NCBI RefSeq assembly: GCF_006345805.1
Contig: NC_043014.1
Location: 23,560,001-23,624,000 of the forward strand
Source of the DNA: Octopus sinensis
Taxonomy: Eukaryota
Direction of reading: 5' to 3'
DNA length: 64,000 nucleotides
A program made the translations under genes and the position numbers. Shown one piece after another: positions 17,597-63,542 of this stretch. How positions within the stretch are numbered: position 1 is the first letter of the stretch; every line of letters begins with the position of its first letter. The notes below the pieces were generated by a model. The model was not told the origin of the DNA. It saw nothing but the letters and a program-made list of their open reading frames with translations, and ran no database searches.

Positions 17597-17798
17597 GAGT
17601 GCAGAAACACGAAGCAAAATTCCTTGTAGTGGCTTCAGAAAATAAGGTGGTTACCAAATCACCAAAATGGCACACAATATGACAAATCAAAACAAAATTT
17701 ACAATATAAATAAGAATGCACCAAAAAGAAAAAAAAATACTCAAATGAACAAAGTTCAATAAGTATCGTAACTGTCACTGGGAAAACAATTGAGAATG

Positions 17799-19362: not shown

Positions 19363-19368
19363 AAATTC

Positions 19369-20298: not shown

Positions 20299-20322
20299 CG
20301 GGCGAAAATCTGTATCCCCTTT

Positions 20323-21000: not shown

Positions 21001-21015
21001 AGCTAGTTTAAATCT

Positions 21016-28689: not shown

Positions 28690-31600
28690 TCTTTCACAGA
28701 CATGTTTACTTCAACGGAGATGTGTTGATATGTGCTGTATCCAAGAAGTAACATGATGAGGAGGTTCTGCTAGGTTCCTCACAGGCAAAGAACACAGGTA
28801 CAAGATTTTCTGGGCAGGGAACACTGACGGGGTTGGGGGTGTGGGTATACTTCTTTCGAAGAAATGGGTAGATAAGGTAATTGAGGTAGTCAGAGTATGC
28901 GACAGAGTACTTAAGATTAGATTAGTGCTCCATCATGGGTTAGCAACTATTATCTCAGCCAGGGCTACCCGATGGACAGAAAGACCAATTCTATGACACC
29001 CTCTTGCAGACTACCGCGTTGACAAATGACAGGGACCTTCTCTTTGTGGCTGGTGACTTCAATGGACATGTTGAACAACATGTCGGAGGCTTCCATGGCA
29101 TACATGGAGGCTACGGTTTTGGCTCTCACAATACTAACTTCAGAAAACCTGCTAGTCACCTACTGCTCTGGAAGACACACTAGTCAGATTGACTATATCC
29201 TCACCAGAAAAAGGGAAAGATGGCTGCTTATAAATGCCAAAACCTTCCCAGGCGAAGAATGTACCACACAACATAGACTGGTAGTTAGTGACTTCAGGAT
29301 CAGGGTTAAATGGATGCCCAGAAGACGACCAGCAAGGAGAAGAAGGGTCTGGAGACTTAAAGATCCCGCAAACAGACAGAGATTTAGAGACATTTGACGA
29401 AATAGAAGGGGATATAGCTTCACATGGTGTAGAAGACAACTGGAGGTTCCTATGGGATAACCTGCTAAGGGTCACTGACCAGATCTGTGGATAGTGCCCA
29501 AAATAACGTGGTGGTGGAAAAATGTTGTTGACAGGGCTATTAGACAAAAAAAAAAGGCTTGGAAGGACTGGAAGAATGGTGGTAGCAGGGAAGTATATCA
29601 GACTGCCAGAAGGGAAGCTAGGAGGCAGGTTTATTTAGCCAGAGGGGAAGCAGATGAGAAAAAATTTGCCAATGTTCTGCGCCGTGAGGACCAAAGATTT
29701 GAGGTATTTTGTGTTGCAAGACAGTGTGTGAGAGAGAATCGTGATGTTGTAGGAGAGAAATGTGTTCACATGGATGATGGTTCACTTGCGCTAAATGAGG
29801 ATGCAAAGAGAGTTTTGGAGACGCCACTATGAAAGGTTTCTGAATAAAGAAAATGAATGGGAGAAAGAGAGTCTGCCAAATGTCGACCCAACAGAGGGAC
29901 CAGCTATCCAAGTTGACAGTACTTTGGTAGATAAGGCTATTAGAAGTATGAAGACAGGGAAAGCCCCCGGCCCATCAGGAATTACTGCAGAGATGCTCAA
30001 AATATCTGGCAGTGTCGGCTATAGCCTAGTCACCCATATAGTTAACCAGGTGATACACGAAGGAGTCATACCCAATGACTGGTGTAGTAGCATAATAGTC
30101 AACTGCTACAAAGGTAAAGGTGACACCTTAGATACAAATAATTATAGAGGTATCAAGCTGTTGGATCAGGTAATGAAGGTTACAGAGAGGGTCAGAGCCC
30201 AACTGATTAGGGAGAGAGTCAGCTTGGATGAGATGCAGTTTGGTTTCATGCCAGGGAAAAGCACCACTGATGCCATATTTCTGGTGAGACAGCTGCAGGA
30301 GAAATACCTAGCCAAAGATAAGCCCCTGTACCTGGCTTTCGTTGACATGGAGAAAGCCTTCGACAGGGTCCCCCGATCCCTTATCTGGTGGTCAATGAGG
30401 AAACTAGGGATAGATGAATGGTTAGTGAGAGCTGTGCAAGCCATGTACAGGGACACTATAAGTAAGGTGAGGGTTGGCAATGAGTACACTGAAGAATTTA
30501 GGGTAGAGGTAGGTGTCCACCAAGGTTCAGTCCTCAGCCCCCCTCCTATTTATCAGTCCTCCAGGCAATAACTGAGGAATTCAAGACATGATGTCCCTGG
30601 GAGCTCCTCTATGCTGATGACCTTGCTCTAATTGTTGAGTCACTATCAGAACTAAAGGAGAAATTTCAAGTGTGGAAATAAGGATTATAATCAACCTAGC
30701 TAAAACAAAAGTCCTAATAAGTAAGAAGGCAGGCAAACCACAAATCCCTTCAGGAAGATGACCCTGCCTAATCTGTAGTAGAGGCATAGGTAGAAACTCT
30801 ATAAGATGTACCCAGTGTAAGCTATGGACACATAAGAGGTGCAGTAATATCAAAGGAAGGCTAACTGGGAGGATAGTTTTTATATGTGCAGATGCTTGGG
30901 AGCAATAAACACTGAAAATGCGCAAAGAACAACTTCCGCCACTTTGCAGGGAGAAAAACTAGAAGTAGTTGATAGCTTCCGTTACCTAGGTAACCAAGTC
31001 AGTAGCAGAGGAGGGTGCACTGAAAGTGTAGCTGCTAGAATAAGAATAGCTTGGGCAAAGTTCAGAGAGCTCTTACCTCTGCTGGTGACAAAGGGCCTCT
31101 CACTCAGAGTAAAAGGTAGACTGTATGACGCTTGTATACGAACAGCCATGCTACATGGCAGTGAAACATGGGCTGTGACTGCTAAGAACATGCGTAAGCT
31201 CGCAAGGAATGAAGCCAGTATGATTCGATGGATGTGTAATTCGGTACCTTGAGAGAAAAGTTGGACCTAAGAAGCATCAGATGTGGTGTGCAAGAGACGA
31301 CTGCACTGGTATGGTCATGTGGCGAGAATGGATGAGGATAGCTGTGTGAAAAAGTGCCACACCCTAGTTGTTGAGGGAACCTGTGGAAAAGGTAGACCCA
31401 AGAAGACCTGGGATGAAGTGGTGAAGCACGACCTTCGAACTTTAGGCCTCACCAAGGAAATGACTAGTGACTGAGACTTTTGGAAATATGCTGTGCTTGA
31501 GAAGACCCAGCAAGCCATATGAAGCCATAACCCGTGGCCTATGCCAGGAGTGTAACCAGCCCACTTATGCGTACCTTTTCCTTCTTTGGACACTAAACTC

Positions 31601-32155
31601 TGCTTACGAAGACATGTTGAGGCAAGTGAAATCAAAATCAAATTCGATGACTGGCATCCGTGCTAGCAGGGTACAAAGAGCACCATATGAGTGTGATCAT
31701 TGACAGAGCGGTTAACCGGCTTCCATGCAGGTGGCATATAAAAGGCACCATTCGAACGTGATCATTACCAGCACTGCCTTACTAGCACTTGTATCCATGC
31801 TAGTATGGTGTCAAGAGCACCATCCGAGCGTGATCGTTGCCAGAGGGCACCATTCGTGCATGCTCATTACCAGCGTCACCTTACTGGTACCTGTGCCGGT
31901 GGCATGTGTAAAAAGATTCAAGTGAGGTCATTGCCAGTACTGCCTGACTGGCCTCCATGCAGGTGGCACATAAAATGCACCCACTACCTCAGAGTGGTTG
32001 GCATTAGTAAGGGCATCCAGCTGTAGAAACTCTGCCAGATCAAGATTGGAGACTGGTGCAGCCATTTGGTTTGCCAACCCTCAATCAAAATCGTCCAACC
32101 CATGCTAGCATGGAGAGCGGATGTTAAATGACAATGATGATGATGATGATGATAC
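28690..32155 (+). mobile_element. RTE-clade LINE copy 1 (APE-RT, degraded, 5' truncated) with structured 3' UTR and (GAT)n tail
   Basis: VAGDFNGHV, SQIDYIL, QHRLVVSDF, NYRGIKLL, FVDMEKAFDRV, VHQGSVLSP, LLYADDL, GRPKKTW; tail at ~32131-32155. Confidence 0.9.
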
Positions 32156-34099: not shown

Positions 34100-35330
34100 G
34101 AACTTATGGTACTATGGAAGCATAGGAAGACAAGAATTCTTGTCGGTTATGCTGCTGCAATTGTTGTTTATATGTGCAATCTCATTTCTCACATATGTGG
34201 CTTTGGCTCTGGTGGGTAAGGCTGATTGGTAGTGGACTGAAAGTTTTCTATTAGTGGCTCTTCTGTAGAATTTAGTAAATATGGAGCCTTCCTCTGTGAT
34301 CTTGAGTTGAAAGTTGAGTAGAGAGAGAATTCCAGATTCATCTGGATGTTCAATCTCAAATTTGATGTTTATGTTGGTGTTATTGAAGGTCCTATGTATG
34401 TTAATGGCCTCATCCCTGGAGGATGTGATGATAAGCATGTCATCAATGTATCTGGTGAAGATGCATGAGCAGCAGGTGTTGAGTGCTGTGCATTCTAGCT
34501 TATCCATGTATGTGATGGCCAGCAGGCCTGAAAGGCTAGATCCCATAGGTAGGCCAGAAGTCTGTTTGTAAATCACACAATTATATTGGAAGTAGGTGTC
34601 ACCAATTATAATGGTTAGTAACTCTCATATGTCTGAGGGTGTAAGGCTGAAGAGCTGGAAGCTGATGGATGGGGAGGTGAGAGAAGATGGAGAGGGAGGG
34701 AGAGATGAAGTGGGAGGTGGGGGAGATAAGGATGTGATGTGGTCTATGAACAGCCAAGAGAGCAGATGCAGAGGTGAAGAGGGAAACTATGTTTAAACTA
34801 AAAAGGTATTTGTTAGTTTTAAGTATGGAGGGGTCGATATCTTTGAGTCTTGTGAAGATTTTATGGGAGCTGCTGACATGTCCGGGGAATGCGTGTAGTA
34901 AGGGCTTGAGAAGTTTAGAGAGGAGCCAAGAAATCTTATAGAAAGGATTATTAATTCGTGATACTATGGGTCTGATTTTAAGCTTAGGTCCGAGTTTGGG
35001 GATTTTTATTAAATGGTAGAAGGATGGAAGGGTGATGTTTTTAGATGGGTAGTTCAGGCTAGTCTTTTTAGAGAGGATCCTTTGGTGACAGATGTTGGTC
35101 CAGCTGGTGTTGATAGTGGACTCCAATTGGTGAGGTGTGATGTAAACCTTTTCATATAGTGTGGTGTCACTGAGGTATTTGATAGCTAGTCTTTTGTAGG
35201 TGGGTTTGTCTATAATGCAGAATTCTTTCCCTTTGTCTGAAGCTAGGTAGATGAGGTTCTTGCAAAATCAGAAATTGGGATTAAGTAAGGTTGCATGATG
35301 GGGTAGAACGTTTATCTAATATGTTAAATA
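34100..35330 (-). mobile_element. Penelope-like element RT relic
   Basis: SDKGKEFCII, LPSFYHLIKIPK, IRPIVSRIN, YKQTSGLPMGSSLSGLLA, RYIDDMLII, FYRRAT. Confidence 0.85.
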
Positions 35331-40351: not shown

Positions 40352-43020
40352 TATATGGTGGTGGAACAATATTGTTGACAGGGCTATTAGACAAAAGAAA
40401 CAGGCTTGGAAGGACTGGAAGAACGGTGCTAGCAGGGAAGTGTATCAGACTGCCAGAAGGAAAGCTAGGAGGCAGGTGTATTTAGCCAGAGGGGAAGCAG
40501 ATAAGAAAAAATTTGCCAATGTTCTGCGCCGTGAGGATGAAAGACTTGAGGTATTTCGTATTGCAAGACAGTGTGTGAGAGAGAATCGTGACGTGGTAGG
40601 AGAGAAATGTGTTCGCAAGGATGTCGGTTCACTTGCGCTAAATGAGGATGCAAAGAGAGAGGTTTGGAGACACCACTATGAAAGGTTGCTGAATGAGGAA
40701 AATGAATGGGATAAAGAGAGTCTGCCGAATGTCGACCCAACAGAGGGACCAGCAATCCGAATTGACAGTTCCTTAGTAGTTAAGGCAATTACAAGCATGA
40801 AAACAGGGAAAGCCCCTGGCCCATCAGGAATTACTGCAGAGATGCTCAATATATCTGGTAGTGTTGGCTATAGACTAGTCACCCGTATAGTTAACCAGGT
40901 GATACACGAAGGAGTCATACCCAATGACTGGTGTAGCAGCATAATAGTCAACTGCTACAAAGGTAAAGGTGACGCTCTAGATACAAATAACTACAGCGGT
41001 ATCAAGCTGCTGGATCAGGTAATGAAGGTCACGGAGAGGGTTATAGCCCAACTAATTAGAGAGAGAGTTAGCTTAGATGAGATGCAGTTTGGGTTCGTGC
41101 CAGGGAAAAGTACTACTGATGCTATATTCCTGGTAAGACAGCTGCAGGAGAAATACCTAGGCAAAGACAAGCCCCTGTATCTGGCTTTTGTTGATATGGA
41201 GAAAGCCTTTGACAGGGTCCCCCGATCCCTTATCTGGTGGTCAATGAGGAAACTAGGGATAGATGAATGGTTAGTGAGAGCTGTGCGATCCATGTACAGA
41301 GACGCTGCTAGTAAGGTGAGGGATGGTAACAAGTACAGTGAAGAATTCTGGGTAGAGGTTGGGGTCCACCAAGGTTCAGTCCTCAGTCCCCTCCTATTTA
41401 TCATAGTCCTCCAGGCAACAACGGAGGAATTCAAGACAGGATGCCCCTGGGAGCTCCTCTATGCTGATGACCTTGCTCTAATTGCTGAGTCTCTATCAGA
41501 ACTGGAGGAGAAGTTTCAGGTGTGGAAGCAAGGTTTAGAATCGAAGGGCCTTAGAATCAACTTAGCCAAAACCAAAGTCCTAATAAGTAGGAAGGTAGAC
41601 CAATCACAAACGCCTTCAGGTAGATGGCCCTGCTTGATCTGTAAAAAAGGCATAGGTAGAAACTCTATAAGGTGCACCAAGTGTAAGCTATGGACACATA
41701 AGAGGTGTAGTAATGTCAAAGGAAGACTAACTAGGAAAATAGTTTTTATCTGTGGCAGATGCTCAGGAGCAATAAACTCTGAAAATATGCAGACTAACTT
41801 CTACCACATTCCAGGGAGAAAAACTAGAAGTAGATGATAGCTTCCGCTACCTAGGTGACCAAGTCAGTAGCAGGGGTGGGTGTGCTGAAAGTGTAATTAC
41901 TAGAGTAAGAATAGCCTGGGCAAAATTTAGAGAGCTCTTACCCCTGCTGGTGACAAAAGGCCTCTCGCTCAGAGTAAAAAGCAGACTGTATGATGCATGT
42001 GTACGAACAGCCATGCTACATGGCAGTGAAACATGGGCTGTGACTGCTGAGGATTTGCGTAAGCTCGCAAGAAATGAAGCCAGTATGCTCCGATGGATGT
42101 ATAATGTCAGTGTTCATAATCGACAGAGTGTAAGTACCTTGAGAGAAAAGTTGGACCTAAGAAGCATCAGTTGTGGTGTGCAAGAGAGACGTTTGCGCTG
42201 GCATGGTCATGTGACGAGAATGGCTGAAGATAGTTGTGTGTGAAAGTGCCACACCCTAGCAGTTGAGGGAACCTGTGGAAGAGGTAGACCCAGGAAAACA
42301 TGGGACGAGGTGGTGAAGCACGACCTTCGAACTTTAGGTCTCACCAAGGAAATGACTAGAGACCGAGACCTATGGAAGTATGCTGTGCGCAAGAAGACCC
42401 GGCAAGACCAGTGAGAACATAACCTGTGGCCTACATACCTTTCCTTCTTGGGACACAAAACACCACTTGTGAAGACCCGTTGAGACAAGTGAAAATCAAA
42501 ATCAAATCAAAATCAAAATCAAACCAAATCAAATCAGATATCAGAGAGCAGAACCAAAATCGAAGTCGATCAACATCAATGGAAATTGCAGCTGTGGTTA
42601 AGCGAACCATCCGATCGTGGCCGTTGCCAGTGCCGCCCCGACTGGCCTCCGTGCCGGTGGCATGTAAAAGCACCATCCGTTCATGTCCGTTGCCAGCCTT
42701 GCCTGGCCCCCGTGCCGGTGGCACGTAGCACCATCCGTTCGTGGCCGTTGCCAGCCTCGCCTGGCCCCCGTGCCGGTGGCACGTAAAAGCACCATCCGTT
42801 CGTGGCCGTTTGCCAGCTCTGTCTGGCACCTGTGCGGGTGGCACGTAAAAAGCACCCACTACACTCACGGAGTGGTTGACGTTAGGAAGGGCATCCAGCC
42901 GTAGAAACACTGCCAGATCAGACTGGGCCTGGTGCAGCCTTCTGGCTTCCCAGACCCCGGTCAAACTGTCCAACCCATGCTAGCACTGAAAACGGACGTT
43001 AAACGGTGATGATGATGATG
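40352..43020 (+). mobile_element. RTE LINE copy 2 (5' truncated, long open RT) with repeat-rich 3' UTR and (GAT)n tail
   Basis: 465-aa ORF 40440-41837 with all RT motifs and a PHD-like finger; 5' end abuts (TA)n. Confidence 0.92.
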
Positions 43021-43410: not shown

Positions 43411-44086
43411 CTCCCTCTTTGTTTCTCTCTCACTTTCCCACTCTCTTACTCTTCCTTTCTCTCGGACTCTCCCTCGCTTTCTCTTACTCTCTATCTTTAT
43501 CTATCTCTCTCCCATTTATAAACAACAAAAGATCTTGAGTAAGTTGAGAAATAAAATATTTAGAAAGATCAATCATAAATATCAGGCAGTAACAACGGAA
43601 AGGTCTGCTTCAAGGCAGACAGCAAAACACTAACATTTAAAAGGGACAGACGAACTTGCGAGCTGAATAAAAATAATAAAATATTGGAAACCAAAGTTTG
43701 AAGTGATAGAATTTGAGGATAGTAGAGTCACCATGGCTGGCATTTCTTAACGACGGACAGCAACGTATTGACAGTTCAACGGCTGGCGTAAAATTTTGAA
43801 CTTGATGTAAATGAAAATCCTTAAACACCAAGTTTGAATTGATTCTTTCTCACGACAGTAGACTCACGATGGCAAGCATTCAAAACTTCTTCATCATGGA
43901 CGGCAACACATTGACGATTAAATGGCTGGCGTAAATTTTTTAGCTTGATGTAACAGAGAATTGCTAAATACCCACTCCTTTAAATTTTAATCCCCTTCCA
44001 GCCCCATTTAGACCCCTTTCCACATTTTGGTTAATATAACCCGATTTCATTTGGGTCTACTGGGGCTACATTTTATAAGATGAGGA

Positions 44087-44340
44087 CTCAACCAAGTTTC
44101 TCGAGTTCTGGTCATAGACCATAGAACACTCAATCAAGTTTCCCGAGTTCTGATCATAGACCATAGAACAGTCAAGCAAGTTTCCCGAGTTCTGGTCATA
44201 GACCATAGAACACTCAACCAAGTTTCCCGAGTTCTGGTCATAGACCATAGAACAGTCAAGCAAGTTTCCCGAGTTCTGGTCATAGACCATAGAACACTCA
44301 ACCAAGTTTCCCGAGTTCTGGTCATAGACCATAGAACACT
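44087..44340 (+). repeat. 42-bp tandem repeat, 6 units
   Basis: GAGTTC recurs at 44103, 44145, 44187, 44229, 44271 and 44313. The unit contains the Gypsy post-PBS sequence. Confidence 0.95.
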
Positions 44341-46070: not shown

Positions 46071-46275
46071 AAGTTTCCCGAGTTCTGGTCATAGACCATA
46101 GAACACTCAATCAAGTTTCCCGAGTTCTGATCATAGACCATAGAACACTCAACCAAGTTTCCCGAGTTCTGGTCATAGACCATAGAACACTCAACCAAGT
46201 TTCCCGAGTTCTGGTCATAGACCATAGAACACTCAACCAAGTTTCCCGAGTTCTGGTCATAGACCATAGAACACT
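46071..46275 (+). repeat. 42-bp tandem repeat, 5 units; followed by a second copy of the Gypsy-like leader to 46517
   Basis: GAGTTC at 46080, 46122, 46164, 46206 and 46248; 46276-46517 duplicates 44341-~44580. Confidence 0.95.
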
Positions 46276-48549: not shown

Positions 48550-51500
48550 TCATCATCATCATCATCATCATCATTTAGCGTCCGTTTTCCATGCTAGCAT
48601 GGGTTGGACGGTTCAACTGGTGTCTGGGGAGCCCGAAGGCTGCACCAGGCCAGTCAGATCTGGCAGTGTTTCTACAGCTTGATGCCCTTCCTAACGCCAA
48701 CCACTCCGAGAGTGTAGTGGGTGATTTTATGTGCCACCGACACAGGTGCCAGACGAGGCTGGCGAACGGCCACGCTCGGATGGTGTTTTTATGTGCCACC
48801 GACACAGGTGCCAGACGAGCCTGACAGACGGCCACGCTCGGATGGTGTTTTTATGTGCCACCGACACAGGTGCCAGATGAGGCTGGCGGACGGCCACGAT
48901 CGGATGGTGTTTGTTACGTCCCCAAAGCACGGAGGCCAGTCTATGCGGTACTGGCTACGGCCACGTTCGGATGATTTTCTTGTGAGCCACCGGCACTGGT
49001 ACCACAAAGATACAAATTCCATTTATGTTCATCTATTTTGATTTGTTTTGATTTGATTTGATTTTCACTTGCCTCAACAGGTCTTCACAAGTGTCACAAG
49101 AAGGAAGGTATGCACAGGTGGACTGACTACGTCCCAGGTAGGGGCCACGGGTTATGGCCTGACTAGTCTTGCCGGGTCTTCGGATGGTGTTTTTATGTGC
49201 CACCGACACAGGTGCCAGATGAGGCTGGCGAACGGCCACGATCGGATGGTGTTTGTTGCGTGCCCACAGCACGGAGGCCAGTCGATGCGGTACTGGCTAC
49301 GGCCACGTTCGGATGGTTTTCTTGTGTGCCACCGGCACTGGTACCACAAAGATACAAATTCCATTGATGTTCATCTATTTTGATTTGATTTGATTTGATT
49401 TGATTTTGATTTTCACTTGCCTCAACAGGTCTTCACAAGTGTCACAAGAAGGAAGGAAGGTATGCACAGGTGGACTGACTACGTCCCAAGTAGGGGCCAC
49501 GGGTTATGGCCTGACTAGTCTTGCCGGGTCTTCGGTTGGTGTTTTTATGTGCCACCGACACAGGTGCCAGATGAGGCTGGCGGACGGCCACGATCGGATG
49601 GTGTTTGTTATGTGCCCACATCACAGAGGCCAGTCGATGCGGTACTGGCTACGGCCACGTTCGGATGGTTTTCTTGTGTGCCACCGGTACTGGTACCACA
49701 AAGATACAAATTCCATTGATGTTCATCTATTTTGATTTGGTTTGATTTGATTTGATTTGATTTTGATTTTGATTTTCACTTGCCTCAACAGGTCTACACA
49801 AGTGTCACACACTTGCCTCAACAGGTCTTCACAAGTGTCATAAGTAGGAAGGTATGCACAGGTGGACTGACTACGTCGCCGGGTCTTCGGATGGTGTTTT
49901 TATGTGCCACCGACACAGGTGCCAGATGTGGCTGGCGAACGGCCACGATCGGATGGTTTTCTTGTGTGCCACCGGTACTGGAACCACAAAGATACAAATT
50001 CCATTGATGTTCATCTATTTTGATTTGGTTGATTTTCACTTGCCTCAACAGGTCTTCACAAGTGTCACACGTGTCACACACTTGCCTCAACAGGTCTCCA
50101 CAAGTGTCACACACTTGCCTCTGCCTCAACAGGTCTTCACAAAGTGTCACACACTTGCCTCTGCCTCAACAGGTCTTCACAAGTGTCATAAGAGGGAAGG
50201 TATGCACAGGTGGACTGACGACGTCGCCGGGTCTTCGGATGGTGTTTTTATGTGCCACCGACACAGGTGCCAGATGAGGCTGGCGAACGGCCACGATCAG
50301 ATGGTGTTTGTTGTGCCCACAGCATGGAGGCCAGTCGATGTGGTACTGGCTACGGCCACGTTCGGATGGTTTTCTTGTGTGCCACCGGTACTGGAACCAC
50401 AAAGATACAAATTCCATTGATGTCAATCTATTTTGATTTGGTTGATTTTCACTTGCCTCAACAGGTCTTCACAAGGGTCACACACTTGCCTCAACAGGTC
50501 TCCACAAGTGTCACACACTTGCCTCTGCCTCAACAGGTCTTCACAAGTGTCACACACTTGCCTCAACAGGTCTTCACAAGTGTCGTAAGAGGGAAGGTAT
50601 GCATAGGTGGACTGACTACGTCGCCGGGTCTTCGGATGGTGTCTTTATGTGCCACCGGCACAGGTGCCAGATGAGGCTGGCGAACGGCCACGATCGGATG
50701 GTGTTTGTTGTGCCCACAGCACGGAGGCCAGTCGATGCGGTACTGGCTACGGCCACGTTTGGGTGGTTTTCTTGTGTGCCACCAGCACTGGTACCACAAA
50801 GAATACAATTCCACTGATGTTCATCTATTTTGATTTGGTTTGATTTTCACTTGCCTCAACAGGTCTTCATAAGTGTCACAAGAAGGAAGGTATGCACAGG
50901 AGGACTGACTACGTCCCAGGTAGGGGCCACGGGTTATGGCCTGACTAGTCTTGCCGGGTCTTCTCACGCACAGCATACTTCCATAGGTCTCGGTCTCTAG
51001 ACATTTCCTTAGTGAGACCTAAAGTTCGAAGGTCGTGCTTCACCACCTCGTCCCAGGTTTTCCTGGGTCTACCTCTTCCACGGGTTCCCTCAACTGCTAG
51101 GGTGTAGCACTTTTGCACACAACTATCTTCAGCCTTTTCGTCACATGACCATACCAGCGCAGCCGTCTCTCTTGCACGCCACAACTGACGCTTCTTAGGT
51201 TCAACTTTTCTCTCAAGGAACTTACACTCTGACGATTATGAACACTGACATTACACATCCATCGGAGCATACTGGCTTCATTTCTTGCAAGCTTACGCAT
51301 ATCCTCAGCAGTCACGGCCCATGTTTCACTACCATGTAGCATGGCTGTACGTACACATGCATCATACAGTCTGCCTTTTACTCTGAGCGAGAGGCCTTTT
51401 GTCACCAGCAGGGGTAAGAGCTCTCTAAACTTTGCCCAGGCTATTCTTACTCTAGCAGTTACACTTTCAGCACACCCACCCCCGCTACTGACTTGGTCTC

Positions 51501-54125
51501 CTAGGTAGCGGAAGCTATCAACTACTTCTAGTTTGTCTCCCTGGAACGTGGCAGAAGTTGGTCTCTGCACATTTCCAGTGTTTATTGCTCCTGAGCATTT
51601 GCCACAGACAAAAACTATTTTCTAGTTAGCCTTCCTTTGACATTGCTGCACCTCTTATGTGTCCATAGCTTACACTTGGTGCATCTTATAGAGTTTCTAC
51701 CTACACCTTTTTTACAGATCGAGCAGGGCCATCTACCTGAAGGCGTTTGTGATTGATCTACCTTCCTACTTATTAGGACTTTGGTTTTGGCTAGGTTGAT
51801 TCTAAGGCCCTTCGATTCTAATCCTTGTTTCCACACCTGAAACTTCTCCTCCAGTTCTGATAGTGACTCAGCAATTAGAGCAAGGTCATCAGCATAGAGG
51901 AGCTCCCAGGGGCAACCTGTCTTGAATTCCTCCGTTATTGCCTGGAGGACTATGATAATAGGAGGGGACTGAGGACTGAACCTTGGTGGACCCCAACCTC
52001 TACCCGGAATTCTTCACTGTACTCGTTGCCAACCCTCACCTTACTAGCAGCGTCTCTGTACATGGCTTGCACAGCTCTCACCAACCATTTTTCTATCCCT
52101 AGTTTCCTCATTGACCACCAGATAAGGGATCGGGGGACCCTGTCAAAGGCTTTCTCCAAGTCAACAAAAGCCAGGTACAAGGGCTTATCTTTGGCTAGGT
52201 ATTTCTCCTGCAGCTGTCTACCAGGAATATAGCATCAGTAGTACTTTTCCTGGCACGAACCCAAACTGCATATCATCTAAGCTAACTCTCTCTCTAATTA
52301 GTTGGGCTATAACCCTCTCCGTAACCTTCATTACCTGATCCAGCAGCTTGATGCCCCTGTAGTTATTTGTCTCTAGGGCGTCGCCTTTACCTTGTAGCAG
52401 TTGACTATTATGCTGCTACACCAGTCATTGGGTATGACCCCCTCGTGTATCACCTGGTTAACTATACGGGTGACTAAGCTATAGCCGACACCACCAGATA
52501 TTTTGAGCATCTCTGCAGTAATTCCTGATGGGCCTGGGGCTTTCCCTGTTTTCATGCTTCTAATTGCCTTATCTACTAAGGAACTGTTAACTCGGATTGC
52601 TGGTCCCTCTGTTGGGTCGACATTCGGCAGACTCTCTTTATCCCATTCATTTTCTTCATTCAGCAACCTATCATAGTGGCGTCTCCAAGCCTCTCTCTTT
52701 GCATCCTCATTTAGCGCAAGTGAACCATCATCCTTGCGAACACATTTCTCTCCTACCACGTCACGATTCTCTCTCACACACTGTCTTGCAACACGAAATA
52801 CCTCAAGACTTTCATCCTCACGGCGCAGGACATTGGCAATTTTTTTCCTATCTGCTCCCCCTCTGGCTAGATAGACCTGTCTCCTAGCTTCCCTTCTGGC
52901 AGTCTGATACACTTCCCTGCTACCACCATTCTTCCAGGCCTTCCAAGCCTGTTTCTTTTGTCTAATAGCCCTGTCAACAATATTGTTCCACCACCACGTT
53001 ATTTTGGGTCTTAAGGGGACTTTGCACCAGCCACAGATCTGGTCAGTGGCTTTCAGCAGGTTGTCCCTGAGAAGCGTCCAGTTGTCTTCTACCCCATGCG
53101 TAGCTATACTCCCTTCCATTTCGTCTAAGGCTTCAAATAACATATCTCTAAATCTCTGTCCATTCGCAGGGTCTTTAAGCTTCCAGACCCTTCTTCTCCA
53201 TGTTGGTCGTCTTCTAGTCGCCCTCTTAGTCCTGATCCTAAAGTCACTAACTACCAGTCTATGTTGTGGGGTGCATTCTTCACCTGGGAAGGTTTTGGCA
53301 TTTATAAGCAGCCATCTTTCCCTTTTTCTGGCAAGGATGTAGTCGATTTGGCTAGTATGCCGGCCCGATCGGTAGGTGACCAGGTGGCTTGTCGGTTTCC
53401 TGAAGTTAGTGTTGCAAATCATAAGACTATTCGCATCGCAGAACTCCAGCAGCCTGGTTCCCTCCTCGTTGCGGGAACCATAACCGTAGCCTCCATGCAC
53501 GCCATGGAAGCCCCCAGCACATCGTCCAACATGCCCATTGAAGTCACCAGCCACAAAGAGAAGGTCCCTGTCGTTCGTCAATGATGTGGTCTGCAGTAGG
53601 GTGTCATAGAAACAGTCTTTCTGTCCATCAGGTAGCCCTGGCTGAGGGGCATAGGCCGATATAATAGTTGCTAAACTATGTGGAGCACTAATCTAATCTT
53701 AATTATTCTGTCACTTACTCTGACTACCTCGATTACCTTATCTACCCATTTTTCGGCGATAAGCATGCCCACACCCCCGACTCCGTCAGTATTCCCAGCC
53801 CAGAAAATCTTGTACCTCTGTCCTTTGCCTGTGAGGAACCTAGCAGAACTCCTCTCCACCTCACTTCTGAATGCAGCATATATCAACCCACCTCCGTTCA
53901 AGCAATTCAACTATCTCGCCAGATCTGCCTTTCAGTGTGCCAACGTTGAGGGTGCCAACCCTGAGGCTGGGGTGGGGGTGGGGGTGTGGAAGTGGTATTG
54001 TCCTAATAGCGTCATGGACCTGAAAAGAAAACTCGCGTTTGGCAGTATTCATAGACAAACAATGGAACTTAAGTTCAAACCTCGTACACAACACTAAACA
54101 TATCTTGCAATGACTGACCACTACC
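48550..54125 (-). mobile_element. RTE LINE copy 3, near full length, with a ~2.4-kb multimerised 3' UTR
   Basis: LRVGTLNVGTLKG (APE start), ORF 52373-53581, RT motifs, PHD-like finger and (GAT)n tail at 48551-48573. Confidence 0.92.
48575..50945 (-). repeat. Higher-order tandem amplification of the RTE 3' UTR (six ~290-410-bp units)
   Basis: The CACAAAGATACAAATTCC marker recurs near 49003, 49345, 49697, 49985, 50398 and 50795. Confidence 0.85.
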
Positions 54126-54967: not shown

Positions 54968-55067
54968 NNNNNNNNNNNNNNNNNNNNNNNNNNNNNNNNN
55001 NNNNNNNNNNNNNNNNNNNNNNNNNNNNNNNNNNNNNNNNNNNNNNNNNNNNNNNNNNNNNNNNNNN
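54968..55067. other. Assembly gap (100 N) within TA-rich microsatellite
   Basis: Seen directly; adjacency across the gap is not proven. Confidence 1.
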
Positions 55068-55189: not shown

Positions 55190-58100
55190 TCTCTATATAT
55201 AAAACTGAAATGCATTTTTACAGCTTGGATCGCTTTCAATGCCATTTACGTCCCGTCCGATTCCCCCCAAAATTTAAAGGGATATGTAGAATGAGGTGAC
55301 GATGCTCGTGGGCTACCTTAGAAATCCCTATCTTAAAAGGTGTGTTTGCTAGGGGCCATCTTCCTCACTGACCCTATTTCCTCCAGTACCCTCTTACTCC
55401 TCTTCATCTGACAAGTCCACTACCGTTATTTAATGTAAATCTTCCTCAAATCACTCTCTCGCTATTTCCTCTCTTCCAAGAACATTTTCACTCACTCTAT
55501 CTCTTAGCTTCCCATACATTTTACTGATGTATCTATCTGCGTTCATAGACAGAAACAAATATTACATCGCCATCGCATTCTATTGTCTACCTGTCAACAC
55601 ACACACACACACACACCCACACACACACACACACACATATATCTAATATTATATTTTTATTTTTATGTTTTTGTGTTTGGTTTTTTACTGTTTCATTTCC
55701 CTATTAGTGGTTTTATCTCTAATTTAATTTCTACAGCGTGCACACACACACCACACACACACCTATATGTGGCCCCAGTACACCCGAATGAAATCGGGTT
55801 CTCTTCATCAAAATGTGAAAAGGGAATGTCCCTGGACCTTCAAGACCTGTTGCAAAAACAGTACTCGAAAACCCCCATGTCAACAGACTGTATACAAAGC
55901 CTAATTATCATTCAGAGATGTATGAACATTTTTACACAAACAAAATTCATGGACAGTACTACCATCAAATGGGAAGTCTTCGGCCGATTCCTGGTAAAGA
56001 GCCTACATTCATGCAGGTTTTCTTTGTTGGTGGTCACGATGAGGAACTTGCTATCAGGAAAAAAAATAATCCAAAACTTGAGCAGCGTGTAATTGAAGTA
56101 CTTCAGATGATGCTCCACCAGACTCATCCTTATGTTCGTGAGTTCAAAAATGCAATGGATACGTTGGATTCTCAACCTCATTTAAAATTGGTGATACATG
56201 CCGACAAAACTCCTGCCGGTGAGCACCCTGGTCGTTTCAATGCTCCAACAACGAATGAAGTTGCAGCACTCATGGTCGATGAGGTCCATGGAAATCGTGA
56301 CATAATCCTCCGTCACCGCGACGAAGACGTGACTTTTGTTTCAGAATTACACCGATGTTACGATTGCTTGCAGTACCCTCTCCTTTTTCCTCATGGAGAG
56401 GATGGATACTACTTAGAAATTCAAAAGGTTGATCCCACAATTCTCACACTTCTTGACAAGGTTTCCTGCAAGGCATTTTACGCCTATCGACTCATGGTGC
56501 GGGAAAACGATTTCAATTTATTACTAAGGTGCTATTCTTTGACCAATCAGTTTTTGGTCGACATGTATTGTAAAGTTGAGTCCGAACGTTTAAAATACAT
56601 TCGTTCTCACCAGGACCAATTAAGAGCAACAGAATACGTTGCATCTAGAGGATGCAATGCGTCAAGACGGTGATGCAGCCAACGTTGGAAAACATATTAT
56701 TCTTCCTTCAACATTTATTGGCTCACCTCGGTATATGAATAAACAAATGCAGGACGCAATGACATACCTCGGTAAGTTTGGAAAGCCGGATCTCTTCATT
56801 ACATTTACCTGGAATCCTACCTGGCCAGAGATTAAAGAGAATGTGTTTGCTGGGCAGCTGCCAGAGCACAGACATGACATTGTGGTGCGCGTTTTTCATG
56901 CCAAGTTGAAGAAAATGCTATTTTTTCTGAAGGTTTTGCATATTTTTTGCCCACTGTCTGCTTGGATGTATACTGTGGAATGGCAGAAGAGAGGTCTTCC
57001 ACACGTTCATATGCTAGCCTGGTGTCAGGATAGAATCCACCCTGTGGATATTGACAGAATTATATCTGCTGAGTTGCCCGATCAAAATGCTGATCCTCAG
57101 CTGCACAGCAGTGTGACAAAGCATATGATTCACGGTCCATGTGGTGACTTTAATCCGAGAAGTCCATGCATGAAGAATAAAAGATGTTCGAAGCGGTACC
57201 CTAGAGACTATTGCGGTCAAACCTGCATTACGAATGATGGATATCCCATCTACCGAAGGCGTGACCCAGGTTTGGGTGGCCACACAGCTACAATTAGACA
57301 ACGGCTAAAAACATTCGATGTTGATAATGCCTGGATCGTTCCATTCAACCCTTTGCTTTCCAAAACATTTAATGCACACATTAATGTTGAGTACTGCAGT
57401 TCGGTGAGATGCATACAATACCTCTGCAAGTACATTAATAAGGGCGATGATATGGCCGTGTTTGTGTTCAGTGATGAAGACCTTAGACATGACGAAATTA
57501 AACAATTCATTTTGGGTAGGTATGTATCCTCCAATTACGCAGCGTGGCGCATTTTTAGATACAAGATTCATCTAAGCTCACCAACAGTTTTCCACCTGAA
57601 TGTTCATTTACAGAAGAGACAGCTGGTTTACTTCACAGAGAAAAATGCACGTCAAGTCATTGAAAATCCAAAAGGGACTACGCTTACAGCATTTTTTAAA
57701 TTGTGTTCAGTTGATGAGTTTGCTGCTACTCTCATTTACCCTGAAGTACCGGAATATTACACATACAACAACAATAATTGGAAGCGCAGGTCACATGGAA
57801 CAGAACTTGACAATTGGCCCGGTGTTTCTAGGAAGAACGTCATTGGACGTGTGTATAATATTCATCCTACCAAAGAGGAAATCTTCTTTTTGACAATGCT
57901 ACTTCATGTAGTTACTGGACCGAAGTCTTTTGCTGATCTTCGCACGGTTGATGGTATCATCTGCGCCACTTACAGGGAAGCATGTTTGAGGCGTGGACTT
58001 CTTCTCAATGACGACCACTTACACAGGACATTAGCAGAGGCCTCAAATTGTAAACTGCCATGGCAAATGCGTCGATTGTTTTGTAGCATATTAATCCACT

Positions 58101-60636
58101 GTAATCCCATCAACCCTCTTAACCTTTGGGAATCGTTCAGACAGAGCCTATCAAAGGACATACAGGCTAATTTAGCGCTACGTGATGGCAACGACGATGT
58201 TTATAATGAGGCATTAATTGACATGGACAGACACATCAGACACTATGTTATACACGGTTTAAGTGAATTCCATCTGCCAACACCTGTCCATCATGAAGCG
58301 CCTTTGGATGTTGAATACATGTCAGAAAAAAACTACAACATTGCCGAATTGACGGAAACAATTACGCGAGATGAACCAATACTTTTGCCTGAACAAAGAG
58401 AGATTTATAATGAAATTATTGACAGCGTTAGATTGAACCAAGGAAAGCTTTTCTTTTTGAATGCTCCAGGTGGTACTGGTAAAACTTTCGTCATCAATTT
58501 GATTCTCGCAAAGCTGCGCGCTGAACGTCGAATTGCCATTGCATGTGCCTCAAGTGGTATTGCAGCGACACTGCTTCAAGGTGGCCGTACGGCACATAGT
58601 GCATTCAAATTGCCCATGGACATTGGAAAGAAAGATAATCCTATATGTAATATAGATCGTAGTTCCTCAAGAGCAAGACTTCTTCGCGAATGCAGTCTTT
58701 TTATTTGGGATGAGGCTATAATGAGTAATAAGGCCATGTTTGAGGCTCTTGACAGAACTCTCCAAGATTTGCATCACAATACAAAAATAATGGGTGGAGC
58801 TACGTTTCTCATGGCAGGAGATTTTCGACAAACTCTTCCTGTTGTCCGAGCAGGCACTAGAGCCGATGAGGTTAATGCATGTATAAAGCATTCTTATGTG
58901 TGGCACAGTGTTATCAGTCGCCATCTTCAAACAAACATGAGAGTCCACCTACATGGTGATGTGGAGTCTGAGGCTTTCGCAAAACACCTATTAGATCTTG
59001 GTGATGGAGTTTTGCCTTTCGTTGATGATGAGCATATTCGGTTGCCTTTTGGGAATTTCGTTCCAAATGTAGAGGAACTTATAAGAGCCGTTTTACCTGA
59101 CGTCGAAACCAACTTCCAGGATCTCGATTGGCTAAGAGCAAGAGCTACTCTATCGCCTCATAATACAACAGCTGATGCTACAAATAAACAAGTACTTGAT
59201 ATGATTCCTGGTGAGATAGTTTCTTTCATGTCCATCGATACAAATAAAGATGAGAATGATGCAGTCAAATATCCACCCGAGCTACTCAACAAGCTAACAC
59301 CTCCGGGACTTCCACCTCATCATTTGTGTTTGAAAGTTGGTGCTCCAATCATGGTGCTCAGAAATATGGAAACGCCTGAAATATGCAATGGAACCCGAAT
59401 GGTTATAAGGAGGATTCAAAGCCATGTTATAACTGCTGAAATTTTGAGTGGACCATTTGTAGGAACAATCAAGATGATACATAAAATGAGTATTTCACCC
59501 TCTGATGTTCCCATTCAGTTTAAACGCTTTCAATTTCCGATAAAACTATGCTTCGCGATGACAATCAACAAGTCACAGGGACAATAACTGGACATTGTAG
59601 GCATTAACCTGTCACAACCGGTTTTCAGTCATGGTCAATTGTACGTAGCCTGTTCTCGAGTTGAAAATCCACATAAACTCTTCATTCTTGGCAATCATGA
59701 GCGCACAAGGAACGTGGTTTATCAGGAGGCTCTGACAAAAGAAAACTGATTGTAAGTCATGAAATTTTGCTTGATTTTTTATTTTGCAGCTCTTCATTAT
59801 CTCTTCATTCTTGAAAATAAAGACATTAAAAAGAACATGGTTCATAAAGAACATTGGGTTCAGATGTTTGCAAACATTTGATCCAACTCACTCTCTTTAT
59901 TCCTCATTTTCCGATTCCTTCTACGTCTCCATTAAACGGTTTTGTCAAGTTATTGTTTCTTCGCTAACATAAGACATTCATAAAGTGAATGAGTTGTTAA
60001 TTACATTTTATACACTATTCCATTGTTTAGGTGGTGTCGAAAGGACTGGCATGTGTCACCATATAAACTCTCTCAGTCAAACTTCCAACTCATGAGTTCA
60101 CGTCGTGATACTCTTTTTACAAAACTGAGCTGGGTGTGAATTCTAATTTCATTCACTATTACAGATTTTTTAATTTTTGAAACAAACACATTGTCTCTTT
60201 CGTTTTAAAACAATAAAACAATACTACCTTAATACATTGGTCCAACAAACAAAACATCCAACACTCTCATTCTTTTATGTATCTGTCTTCCTCCATCACT
60301 CACTCACTTTTCTCCCTTCCTTTCACTTTCAATCTATAATGTCGTTTCACAGCGTCTACCTCCCTTACATTCACTTTCTCTTTATAATGTCGTTTCACAG
60401 CGTCCGTTATCCCCCCTCCCTGCCTTCCACAGCGCTTTCACACACTCTCACTCTCTACGTCTGTCTGCATTCATAGAGAGAATTATCATCGCCACAACCA
60501 CCACTCAATCATGACAACAAATATTATGAATCAGATATTTATTGGGTTAATTTATATATGTGTGTGTGTGTATCTATATATAAATATGTATAATTAATAA
60601 TTTTTATATATACAAAGTGCATATATCTTTATTTAT

Positions 60637-60640
<4 letters not shown>
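55190..60640 (+). mobile_element. Autonomous-type Helitron; 3' terminus not identified
   Basis: 5' A|TC start followed by a Rep/Helicase coding region. The end coordinate is approximate. Confidence 0.85.
55918..59749 (+). pseudogene. Helitron Rep/PIF1 helicase, with one frameshift (~56640) and one premature stop (59585)
   Basis: Rep motifs PDLFITFTWNP, VEWQKRGLPHVH and YLCKYINKG; helicase motifs APGGTGKT, IWDEA, GDFRQTLPV and FAMTINKSQGQ*LDIVG..FSHGQLYVACSRV continuing to TGA at 59747-59749. Confidence 0.92.
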
Positions 60641-60674
<34 letters not shown>

Positions 60675-60790
60675 ATGTATGTATATATATATATATATGT
60701 ATGTATATATATATATATATGTATGTATTATATATATATATGTATGTATATATATATATATGTATGTATATATATATATATATATGTATG

Positions 60791-60825
<35 letters not shown>

Positions 60826-60974
60826 GAAATAAATATAAGAGAGTGGTCACTATATGGCTCACTCTAGCACTAGTTAATCCAAAAGGTTTCAACCACAAAA
60901 AATACATGTTTCCTATGAAAGTCAGTACGATTGTTAGCTCACATAGACAGGGCAAATAAAAAATAACAAAAATA

Positions 60975-61070
60975 CAGATTATTTTGGGACAATTGTTTCG
61001 CTATTAATGAATTAAATGTAATTTTACTTACAAAAAAATCCACTTGTAGCTCGTCAGCCAAAACTATCTG
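60975..61070 (-). ncRNA. Type I hammerhead ribozyme, unit 1
   Basis: CAGAT ag TTTTGG-CTGACGA-GCTA..43nt..TAGC-GAAA-CAATTG-TC^-CCAAAA ta ATCTG; predicted cleavage between 60988 and 60987. Confidence 0.85.
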
Positions 61071-61510
61071 GATGAAATCCACTCAATCACACGCCAGATT
61101 TTACTATAACGATAAATACACGTGTGGTTCAATTGATTACATCCGACGTTATAATTCAAATGCCCCAACTAACAGCGCGCCAAACTTTCACGGAAAACAA
61201 ATACTGCATTTAGAAATAAATGTAGCATAATTATAATTAATTAATAAGGGTGAGAGAATTAGATACTAATTTAATAGTATATCTATTCAACACCAAGTGG
61301 CCTAGTGCTCCGAGAAACCTGGATTATTATAATATTTTATAATATATTATAATATTTTTACAAAATATATATAAGAGAGTGGTCACTATATGGCTCACTC
61401 TAGCACTAGTTAATCCAAAAGGTTTCAACCACAAAAAATACATGTTTCCTATGAAAGTCAGTACGATTGTTAGCTCACACAGACAGGGCAAATAAAAAAT
61501 AACAAAAATA

Positions 61511-61606
61511 CAGATTATTTTGGGACAATTGTTTCGCTATTAATGAATTAAATGTAATTTTACTTACAAAAAAATCCACTTGTAGCTCGTCAGCCAAAAC
61601 TATCTG
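61511..61606 (-). ncRNA. Type I hammerhead ribozyme, unit 2
   Basis: Identical to unit 1. Confidence 0.85.
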
Positions 61607-62046
61607 GATGAAATCCACTCAATCACACGCCAGATTTTACTATAACGATAAATACACGAGTGGTTCAATTGATTACATCTGACGTTATAATTCAAATGCC
61701 CCAACTAACAGCGCGCCAAACTTTCACGGAAAACAAATACTGCATTTAGAAATAAATGTAGCATAATTATAATTAATTAATAAGGGTGAGAGAATTAGAT
61801 ACTAATTTAATAGTATATCTATTCAACACCAAGTGGCCTAGTGCTCCGAGAAACCTGGATTATTATAATATTTTATAATATATTATAATATTTTTACAAA
61901 ATAAATATAAGAGAGTGGTCACTATATGGCTCACTCTAGCACTAGTTAATCCAAAAGGTTTCAACCACAAAAAATACATGTTTCCTATGAAAGTCAGTAC
62001 GATTGTTAGCTCACACAGACAGGGCAAATAAAAAATAACAAAAATA

Positions 62047-62142
62047 CAGATTATTTTGGGACAATTGTTTCGCTATTAATGAATTAAATGTAATTTTACT
62101 TACAAAAAAATCCACTTGTAGCTCGTCAGCCAAAACTATCTG
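62047..62142 (-). ncRNA. Type I hammerhead ribozyme, unit 3
   Basis: Identical to unit 1. Confidence 0.85.
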
Positions 62143-62539
62143 GATGAAATCCACTCAATCACACGCCAGATTTTACCATAACGATAAATACACGTGTGGT
62201 TCAATTGATTACATCCGACGTTATAATTCAAATGCCCCAACTAACAGCGCGCCAAACTTTCACGGAAAACAAATACTGCATTTAGAAATAAATGTAGCAT
62301 AATTATAATTAATTAATAAGGGTGAGAGAATTAGATACTAATTTAATAGTATATCTATTCAACACCAAGTGGCCTAGTGCTCCGAGAAACCTGGATTATT
62401 ATAATATTTTATAATATATTATAATATTTTTACAAAATAAATATAAGAGAGTGGTCACTATATGGCTCACTCTAGCACTAGTTAATCCAAAAGGTTTCAA
62501 CCACAAAAAATACATGTTTCCCATGAAAGTCAGTACGAT

Positions 62540-63413
62540 TGTTAGTCCACCACTGAAAGCGGCAGTGGGCAGCGAACGCAAGCCAGAAACCGAGACAACA
62601 ACAACAAAGGAGAGAGACAGTTGGAGGCAGTTGCTTAATTTAACACTTTATATACTTCACAAAATCAATCAAAACATTTCAAAACAAAAGCATTTAACTA
62701 CAAGGTTAACAAACATTTAACAGATCGTACACAGAGTTTAAAAAAAGAATAATCAATGGCATTTAGCAAAATACAACGCCCGACAACAATCAGTTAATGT
62801 TCAGAGTTTGATCCTTCAAAACGAATAGTCTTTCTCTTTTCTTTTCTCCTCTTTCTTTTTCTTTTAGAAACACATCTTACAGTTCTTTTTCTTTTTTTTT
62901 ACATTTACAAGTTCTCTTTTTTTTTTCCTTTTCTTTTTCAACAGATTATGTCACAGAGTCTCCTTTTTTTACATTTAAAACATCAAAGTTCAAAACACAA
63001 ATCAAAACGTAAATAAACATTACCGGCACATATTCCTCTCCGCAACACTCAAAACAGAACCCCACTATATCAGTCCGGCTTCTTCACATGTCTCTCTCTG
63101 CCCCTTCACTGTCATCTTCTTTACTACCTCTATCTGTCTCTCGCTGTCTTCATCTCTAACTCCCTGCCTGTCTTCCTTGCTTCGCTGCTATCATCTCTTG
63201 GCTGGCTGTCCGCATCAACTGACTGTCTCTCCCAACTACCGCCTCTTGCCAACTGACACACTAACACCAGTGCCCGTCGCCTTTTTAAAGGGTGGCATTT
63301 TTATTTTTTTATCAACTTTCCTTGACCGTGTAGGGATCAGAGATCGCTTCCTAAGCTCATTATTTACCGTGGCCGTTGACAGGACAAAGATTTTTTTTTC
63401 CTCATCCTGAACA
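62540..63413. mobile_element. Possible solo LTR or other repeat truncating the hammerhead array
   Basis: TGTT...AACA ends and LTR-like composition; no TSD found. Confidence 0.25.
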
Positions 63414-63489
63414 ACTGGAGTGCCGGTTCAACTCAAACTCCAACCAACGGAACTAGGGCACAATGTTCTGTTAATTTACCTCTGTAATA

Positions 63490-63542
63490 ATATATTTATA
63501 TATATATATACTTTTGTATGTATGTGTGTGTGTGTGTGTATA

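Follow-up and report, generated by a model that had tools for sequence, protein, structure and literature searches.

In animals, retrozymes are the chief known origin of circular RNAs made by ribozymes, and their movement is still inferred. Metazoan retrozymes are short tandem repeats of low GC content without open reading frames (ORFs), long terminal repeats (LTRs), a primer-binding site (PBS) or a polypurine tract (PPT), which give rise to self-paired circular RNAs and co-occur with Penelope-like elements (PLEs; PMC7229834). They are transcribed, self-cleaved and circularised, most likely by tRNA ligase, and PLEs are favoured for copying them back into the genome (PMC4209133, PMC7229834). 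Here we describe a 64-kb stretch of the Octopus sinensis genome (NC_043014.1, 23,560,001–23,624,000; hereafter the window, with positions counted from its first nucleotide) in which a tandem array of 536-bp units carries one hammerhead ribozyme motif on the minus strand of every full unit. From its sequence features we estimate a probability of about 75% that the array is a non-LTR retrozyme (hammerhead satellite) of the octopus genome. Its organization places it in a known class, not in a new kind of element: the features that set it apart, namely that its host is a cephalopod, that a long hairpin takes the place of loop 2 and that it adjoins a TA microsatellite, do not make it a new kind of system. 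We found no report of cephalopod hammerheads or retrozymes in the searchable literature, and the locus would extend the retrozyme class to cephalopods.

Comparison With Described Hammerhead Repeats

The array resembles the metazoan non-LTR retrozymes of coral, mussel and axolotl (PMC7229834) in having a type I hammerhead in each short head-to-tail unit, low GC content, no ORF or LTR, a self-paired monomer, few units per locus and a co-occurrence with PLEs. In the canonical metazoan type I hammerhead, helices I and II measure 6 and 4 bp, and helix III, of 1–2 bp, is capped by a palindromic loop of 2–4 nt (PMC4209133); the octopus motif has the invertebrate version of this architecture, in which helix III consists of 2 bp and a palindromic tetraloop. 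A preliminary description of the locus had compared the motif with minimal type I hammerheads; it is indeed of type I, but the helix lengths (6, 4, and 2 bp for helices I, II, and III) are those of the canonical metazoan form. The same description held the unit to be longer than metazoan retrozymes. At 536 nt it does exceed the ranges given in 2020 (170–400 nt, and tandem repeats of 150–450 bp; PMC7229834), but it lies within the consensus lengths of 51–972 bp found in a 2026 survey of vertebrates, where most families have at most seven units per locus (bioRxiv 10.64898/2026.07.22.740005). That survey treats a hammerhead in every repeat as its operational criterion for an “active” element, and the octopus motif is intact in three of three full units. 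The GC content of the unit is 31%, against the 45–50% below which retrozymes are expected to fall, and PLE co-occurrence is represented by one relic in the window and one fragment in Octopus bimaculoides, both decayed. The other differences from described metazoan retrozymes are the cephalopod host and a hairpin of ∼43 nt in place of loop 2, owing to which the usual loop 1/loop 2 contact cannot be recognized.

Type I hammerheads also occur in satellites, and satellite 2 of newts is an example of the hammerhead satellites that have historically been counted among the metazoan non-LTR retrozymes. The cave-cricket satellite pDo500 is a tandem repeat of ∼500 bp with a type I hammerhead and a weak palindromic helix III. 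Satellite 2 of newts and salamanders (∼330 bp; cited in PMC7229834) likewise combines a tandem unit, a type I hammerhead and a weak palindromic helix III, a feature that in such satellites favors double-hammerhead cleavage of multimeric transcripts (as cited in PMC7229834). Both satellites form very large, high-copy arrays, whereas here 3.2 units are found at one locus, and the sequences are unrelated.

The minimal hammerhead ribozymes (min-HHRs) of PLE pseudo-LTRs (PMC4209133) are similar to the octopus motif in their type I topology, their palindromic or absent helix III, which implies action as dimers, and their tandem context. Insertion at AT-rich or (TA)n sites and the presence of inverted 5′-truncated copies are further points of likeness, the latter being seen here at the second octopus locus described below. 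The array differs in being without a PLE ORF and in its canonical helix I and II lengths. Min-HHRs have no or a minimal helix III, a helix II of 7–8 bp and a helix I of 4–5 bp (PMC4209133), whereas helix I of the array has 6–7 bp, and helix II exactly 4 bp followed by an internal loop. Plant LTR retrozymes (PMC4918200) are also non-autonomous and non-coding, with monomers of similar size (600–1000 nt), and their hammerheads release a monomer RNA that circularises, a behavior that for the octopus array is only predicted. They are set apart by type III hammerheads within LTRs, a PBS and PPT, 4-bp target duplications, a GC content above 55% and dependence on Gypsy elements.

Organization of the 536-bp Array

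The array and its units are laid out as follows; the minus strand is the RNA-sense strand, which carries the ribozyme.

60827–62545, minus strand: tandem array of 3.21 units with 536-bp spacing
60827–61362: full unit 1
61363–61898: full unit 2
61899–62434: full unit 3
62435–62545: partial fourth unit of 111 bp, which stops short of the ribozyme region and contains no ribozyme

The units are arranged head-to-tail and are 99.25% identical, in agreement with the repeat length and extent given by the preliminary description. Only six positions differ within the array, each difference being private to one unit. Tandem Repeats Finder (TRF) did not report the array because its longest period is 500. 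No further copy of the unit was found elsewhere in the window. The longest ORF per unit is 54 aa, and a search with the six short ORFs of the unit, concatenated, returned no homologs among 5.8 billion proteins (E ≤ 10), which upholds the earlier remark that no credible ORF is present. Used as an indirect route, by way of spurious ORF calls, to transcript contigs or to other copies of the unit, the same search also returned nothing. The only repeats at the array are the units themselves, and there are thus no LTRs; no scan was aimed at PBS or PPT motifs.

The 536-nt monomer is predicted to be highly self-paired. Its minimum free energy (MFE) is −141.3 kcal/mol (z = −4.9), a stability equaled by 0 of 100 shuffled sequences, and 67% of bases are paired in the circular fold; the complementary strand is likewise structured (z = −7.0). 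With one hammerhead per full unit, tandem arrangement, low GC content, no coding capacity and strong self-pairing, the retrozyme-type reading proposed for the array is supported at the level of sequence.

Hammerhead Motif and Predicted Cleavage Sites

Both strands of the window were scanned for a structural pattern made up, in order, of the 5′ strand of helix I, CUGANGA, a hairpin for helix II, GAAA, helix III, UH and the 3′ strand of helix I. There were exactly three matches in 64 kb, all of them on the minus strand of the array, one in each full unit:

61064–60981, 61600–61517, and 62136–62053, minus strand: structural-scan matches
60975–61070, minus strand: hammerhead 1, spanning 96 nt when the extension of stem I is counted (stem I, 61070–61058 and 60987–60975; CUGACGA, 61057–61051; helix II, 61050–61000; GAAA, 60999–60996; helix III ACAAUUGU, 60996–60989; C17, 60988)
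61000–61050, minus strand: extended helix II of hammerhead 1 (4 bp, 2 × 2 internal loop, imperfect hairpin)
61511–61606, minus strand: hammerhead 2, identical to hammerhead 1 (Rfam Hammerhead_1, 30.0 bits at 61518–61599)
62047–62142, minus strand: hammerhead 3, identical to hammerhead 1 (structural scan)
60988/60987, minus strand: predicted self-cleavage site 1, between C17 (60988) and C1.1 (60987)
61524/61523, minus strand: predicted self-cleavage site 2
62060/62059, minus strand: predicted self-cleavage site 3

The motif, with the predicted cleavage site marked by an arrow, reads 5′-CAGAU-A-GUUUUGG-CUGACGA-GCUA[43 nt]UAGC-GAAA-CAAUUG-UC↓CCAAAAU-A-AUCUG-3′. Stem I is formed by UUUUGG/CCAAAA and a G·U pair, continued after an A/A mismatch by CAGAU/AUCUG. 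The CUGACGA core is accompanied by GAAA, the palindromic helix III and the GUC that precedes the cleavage site. Stem II (GCUA/UAGC) closes 43 nt that fold as an imperfect hairpin including UGUAA/UUACA. This extended helix II stands where the usual loop 2 would be and is repeated at +536 and +1072; its fold has an energy of −12.6 kcal/mol (z = −4.2), with 0 of 200 shuffles equally stable. The complete type I set is therefore present (core C3–A9, G12–A14, A15.1–U16.1, C17, and G10.1–C11.1; helices I–III, with helix I open), and the identical intact hammerhead occurs in 3/3 full units. Every element that the preliminary description had listed for the minus strand was recovered in its place, and its predicted cut after 60988 coincides with the position that we re-derived from the sequence coordinates. 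Sites 1 and 2 would bound one full 536-nt monomer (61523 down to 60988), and sites 2 and 3 a second.

The hammerhead motif in the array is real and goes beyond chance. When the window was simulated with a first-order Markov model, loose matches arose at 0.027 per 64 kb, and none of 300 simulations equaled the observed motif. A control search of metagenomes for the core with a long spacer and the same helix III gave 27 matches, near the chance expectation, none of which had paired helices I and II. The exact 22-mer of the ribozyme had 0 matches in metagenome, viral and prokaryote-genome collections.

A search with the Rfam type I model, as the preliminary description had proposed, matched Hammerhead_1 (RF00163) at 30.0 bits (E = 4.4e-6) with all model positions 1–45 aligned when the input was 126 nt (61495–61620). 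The score is below the curated gathering score of 34 bits because of a 39-nt insertion in loop 2, where the ∼43-nt hairpin lies. The model was silent on the whole window at the gathering score, and equally so in permissive searches with inputs of 2 kb or of a single 536-nt unit; since the short input did match, the default speed filters evidently lose this variant. No other ribozyme family was detected on either strand in the Rfam scans, which is only weak evidence of absence because the filters drop such hits.

The few differences between units had been said to fall outside the ribozyme. They do, but this is uninformative: with only six single-nucleotide polymorphisms (SNPs) and ribozymes making up ∼17% of the array, ∼33% of random placements would also miss them. 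We therefore gave the avoidance no weight and rejected the SNP distribution as a sign of selection on the ribozyme (P about 0.33).

Monomer and Dimer Folding

By nearest-neighbor energies, helix III gains nothing as a hairpin, whereas a two-copy duplex gains −6.4 kcal/mol. In the predicted MFE structure of the isolated motif, which is a non-catalytic fold, G5–A9 (GACGA) pairs with UUGUC, that is, with the 3′ half of helix III plus C17, and so masks the core. This 5-bp pairing, possible because of the C at variable position 7, is calculated to be ∼5 kcal/mol more stable than the secondary structure needed for catalysis, and may represent either an off-state built into the monomer or an artefact of nearest-neighbor folding. 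Taken together, the duplex energy of helix III and the masked monomer core fit a prediction of double-hammerhead cleavage in multimers and protection of the finished monomer. Dimer-only action of the window hammerhead is plausible on these models; counting against it, cleavage of monomers is on record for invertebrate ribozymes whose helix III is the same (PMC7229834).

A Second Octopus Family and Its Insertion Footprint

Applied to the other octopus loci that we fetched, the same structural scan found two more hammerheads, 592 bp apart on the minus strand of an Octopus vulgaris locus (L001; OX597842.1, about 27.756 Mb). We refer to the 536-bp unit of the window as family A and to the 592-bp unit of this locus as family B.

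L001 16689–17703, minus strand: family B locus
L001 17566–17467 and 16974–16875, minus strand: family B ribozymes

The two families have an identical core (CUGANGA, GAAA, GUC), and their stems differ by compensatory changes: three of the six pairs of helix I and two of the exactly 4 bp of helix II are changed on both sides, with pairing kept. In both, helix II consists of 4 bp, a 2 × 2 internal loop and a long imperfect hairpin (51 nt with z = −4.2 in A; 69 nt with z = −2.6 in B), and helix III is short and self-complementary (ACAAUUGU in A, ACGUGCGU in B). That core and stems are intact in 3/3 A units and 2/2 B units, with compensatory changes between them, argues for selection on the ribozyme. 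The family B motif scores 21.2 bits with Rfam Hammerhead_1, and its monomer is strongly structured (z = −6.1). Outside the ribozyme the families share one 37-nt colinear block, the score of which was reached by 8 of 500 shuffles; we have treated homology outside the ribozyme as not established.

Read in the ribozyme sense, the family B locus consists of (TA/TG)n, a 121-nt inverted fragment, 1.51 direct units and (TA)n. The inverted fragment (17703–17583) is 95% identical to the reverse complement of 17184–17303, the direct units (17583–16689) are 98.4% identical over 304 bp, and both 3′ ends face (TA)n. A segmental duplication within L001 supplies the matching empty site: positions 1–2534 are colinear with 15361–16685 plus 17718–19000 at 94–96% identity, and at about 1249–1282 this duplicate has an uninterrupted (AT)n where the other copy holds the ∼1-kb family B block. 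The filled and empty sites show that the inverted fragment and the tandem hammerhead units were inserted as one piece into a TA microsatellite. As a sequence pattern, the footprint fits target-primed reverse transcription and closely matches the description of PLE insertions.

On the plus strand of the same locus, at about 16440–16530 (paralog at about 1101–1122), lies a degenerate sequence reminiscent of a hammerhead, CUGAAAA…GAAACAAUUGUA↓CC. It is similar to the window ribozyme in its 3′ half (22 nt, 91%), but carries a mutated G8 and has stems that are unpaired. The relic is either a decayed solo copy or a chance match.

Array Junctions and the Neighboring Helitron

On its left the array is bordered by a microsatellite and a Helitron:

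60621–60826, no strand: (TA)n microsatellite directly next to the array at its RNA-sense 3′ end; presumed target of insertion and site of priming
55825 to about 60640–60650, plus strand: Helitron with Rep/helicase ORF
56639–59587, plus strand: Rep/helicase ORF of the Helitron (982 aa; Helitron_like_N and PIF1), ending 1.2 kb upstream of the array

In RNA sense, the array meets the (TA)n tract at its 3′ end (…UUAUAUUUAUUU), and its 5′ end is truncated at an arbitrary position within the unit (offset ∼121) that is not a cleavage site. Such a 3′ end at (TA)n together with an arbitrary 5′ truncation would be left by reverse transcription of a multimeric or circular template, had priming taken place at a TA microsatellite that was nicked. 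No target-site duplication was recognizable at the array. The right flank (62546–63490) has stops in all six frames and no Pfam signal of a reverse transcriptase (RT), endonuclease or GIY-YIG domain.

The closest relatives of the Helitron ORF are proteins of O. vulgaris (96%) and O. sinensis (88%). Four further copies of the same Helitron, three in L001 and one at another O. sinensis locus (L002), are 93–97.6% identical to window positions 55825–∼60650. In all four, homology to the window stops at or inside the (TA)n tract, and each continues differently; the 536-bp unit is present in 0/4. The array is therefore a neighbor of the Helitron and not a part of it. The Helitron ORF ends early, its helicase C-terminal motif running on frame-shifted to about 59750, and its N-terminal part is split over 55583–56673. 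As all of these Helitron copies end at or in (TA)n, this type of microsatellite is one on which both the Helitron and the ribozyme repeat have landed. A 100-N assembly gap (54968–55067) lies just upstream of the Helitron.

Reverse Transcriptases in the Window

The preliminary description had reported PLE RT relics in the window. One was identified, and the remaining RTs are of long interspersed nuclear element (LINE) or Gypsy type:

34112–35126, minus strand: decayed PLE RT relic, the homologs of which carry RVT_1 and GIY-YIG (PF01541)
29129–31650, 40356–42737, and 50633–53414 (inverted): three LINE copies, 85–90% identical, in which RVT_1, a PHD-like finger and, weakly, an APE-type endonuclease were recognized
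784–1446: LINE-type RT fragment, best matching L1 ORF2p and R2
17799–21717, minus strand: remnant of a Gypsy-type LTR retrotransposon that retains zinc-binding and core domains of integrase, RNase H and a gag-like ORF (DUF7041)

The PLE relic lies 26 kb from the array and had no match among solved structures. A related PLE RT fragment, also decayed, is annotated in O. bimaculoides (locus L003). No hammerhead was found beside either of these PLE sequences, and the 536-bp unit resembles neither the relic region of the window nor L003. The earlier suggestion to look for linkage to PLE ORFs was followed at this locus, and none is attached on either flank or between units. The relic thus marks a candidate mobilizing family in the genome, without a physical link to the array; as it is single, decayed and 26 kb away, a PLE partnership stays an inference. 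The LINE copies at 29–31, 40–42, and 50–53 kb, the best structural relatives of which are L1 ORF2p and R2, are the RTs most easily mistaken for PLE relics.

Proposed Route of Formation

By analogy with the described behavior of the retrozyme class, a minus-strand transcript of at least two units would be cut 3′ of GUC at 62060/62059, 61524/61523, and 60988/60987, probably helped by two neighboring ribozymes pairing their palindromic helices III. Two full 536-nt monomers with 5′-OH and 2′,3′-cyclic phosphate ends would be released, and these could be circularised by the host tRNA ligase (RtcB type). Multimeric or circular RNA might then be copied by the RT of an autonomous non-LTR element, for which a PLE is favored and a LINE possible, with copying primed at a nicked target that is AT-rich or a TA microsatellite. 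A single event of this kind could deposit several units in tandem, truncated on the 5′ side at an arbitrary point of the unit. PLEs prefer (TA)n or AT-rich targets, nick both strands, often leave an inverted 5′-truncated copy and initiate internally (PMC8557442, PMC11167929).

Alternative Explanations

The array might instead be an ordinary mini- or satellite repeat that was amplified and moved as DNA only, by unequal crossing-over or through circular DNA that was excised and reinserted at microhomology, with its hammerhead an inactive fossil. Very high unit identity is what recent unequal exchange or gene conversion would produce, no target-site duplication is recognizable, the predicted monomer MFE structure masks the core, and the AT-rich microhomology of the unit end (…TATATTTATTT) with (TA)n could be used in DNA repair no less than in priming. 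This explanation nevertheless leaves unaccounted for the compensatory changes that accompany intact cores and stems in both octopus families. An inverted 5′-truncated fragment with both 3′ ends facing a microsatellite, as in family B, is moreover typical of two-strand target-primed reverse transcription and is not a footprint that circular-DNA reintegration typically gives, and every class member examined experimentally has proved to be transcribed and processed (PMC7229834). We consider a DNA-only origin unlikely. Somewhat less probable still is that the array represents stacked PLE pseudo-LTRs, the terminal repeats of an autonomous PLE from which the ORF is missing. PLE pseudo-LTRs do bear type I hammerheads and occur as partial tandems (PMC4209133), vertebrate retrozymes were found to be sister to them in a 2026 preprint (bioRxiv 10.64898/2026.07.22.740005), a PLE RT relic is present in the window, and a preference for (TA)n targets fits PLEs (PMC8557442). 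Against this, the three units are contiguous with no ORF intervening, the right flank is devoid of RT and GIY-YIG signals, the left side consists of (TA)n and the Helitron, the unit is dissimilar to both the PLE relic region and the O. bimaculoides locus, and the ribozyme is of the canonical retrozyme type, not a PLE min-HHR.

With a Rep/helicase ORF ending only 1.2 kb away, the array could also be thought of as cargo or as a 3′-terminal tandem repeat of the Helitron, generated by rolling-circle DNA transposition. Helitron-type elements of molluscs and insects are known to carry satellite-like arrays. Here, however, four paralogous or orthologous copies end at or in (TA)n without the unit, on which ground we excluded Helitron cargo, and the ribozyme is antisense to the Helitron ORF; such an origin is very improbable. 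Even less credence can be given to a chance motif within a local duplication, or to an assembly artefact that inflated one unit to three. The 100-N gap 6 kb upstream and the failure to reach the Rfam gathering threshold could be cited in its favor, but none of 300 simulations gave as good a motif, the Rfam E-value is 4.4e-6, and family B is an independent repeat of the same design. The private SNPs of each unit and the defined, different junctions at both ends are also not expected from a collapsed or expanded assembly repeat.

Several observations weigh against the retrozyme interpretation or against a PLE as its RT donor. The formal Rfam threshold is not reached, the predicted MFE structure of the isolated motif is non-catalytic, and (TA)n is in contact with the array on one side only. 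LINEs are abundant in the window. LINE twin priming also yields inverted-plus-direct insertions, and because these inversions are similar, both a PLE and a LINE are possible donors. The PLE relics seen are all decayed, with no intact octopus PLE among the loci examined; Naiad-type PLEs of cephalopods are reported to be long inactive (PMC8557442), and the only PLE tested in vitro requires part of its own ORF in the template (PMC11167929).

Implications

It is possible, though we hold the idea only tentatively, that octopuses carry an overlooked lineage of long retrozymes (536–592 nt) in which loop 2 is replaced by an extended hairpin, a design that scores below the usual detection thresholds, and which is perhaps still mobile by PLE-type integration. 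Were this so, the TA-microsatellite target, the inverted 5′-truncated fragment with its multi-unit tandem block and the filled/empty-site pair would provide direct genomic evidence, the first of its kind, for the integration of retrozyme RNA by PLE-type two-strand target-primed reverse transcription, and helix II (4 bp, internal loop and hairpin) would serve as a tertiary docking partner of helix I or as a handle recognized by the RT. Direct insertion footprints are scarce for this class, and the filled/empty pair of O. vulgaris is the most useful by-product of the analysis; its junctions, together with those of the window, can be used to test the reverse-transcription route and the identity of the RT donor. 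As hammerheads with a long helix II escape both the Rfam threshold and the default filters, surveys probably undercount such elements.

Other Tandem Repeats in the Window

No hammerhead motif was found in the other arrays of the window. An array of 3.2 units of 352 bp (48838–49957) and one of 2.3 units of 397 bp (49939–50880) are GC-rich and lie beside LINE 3′ regions. Two tandem arrays with 42-bp units are located at 44086–44340 and 46071–46275.

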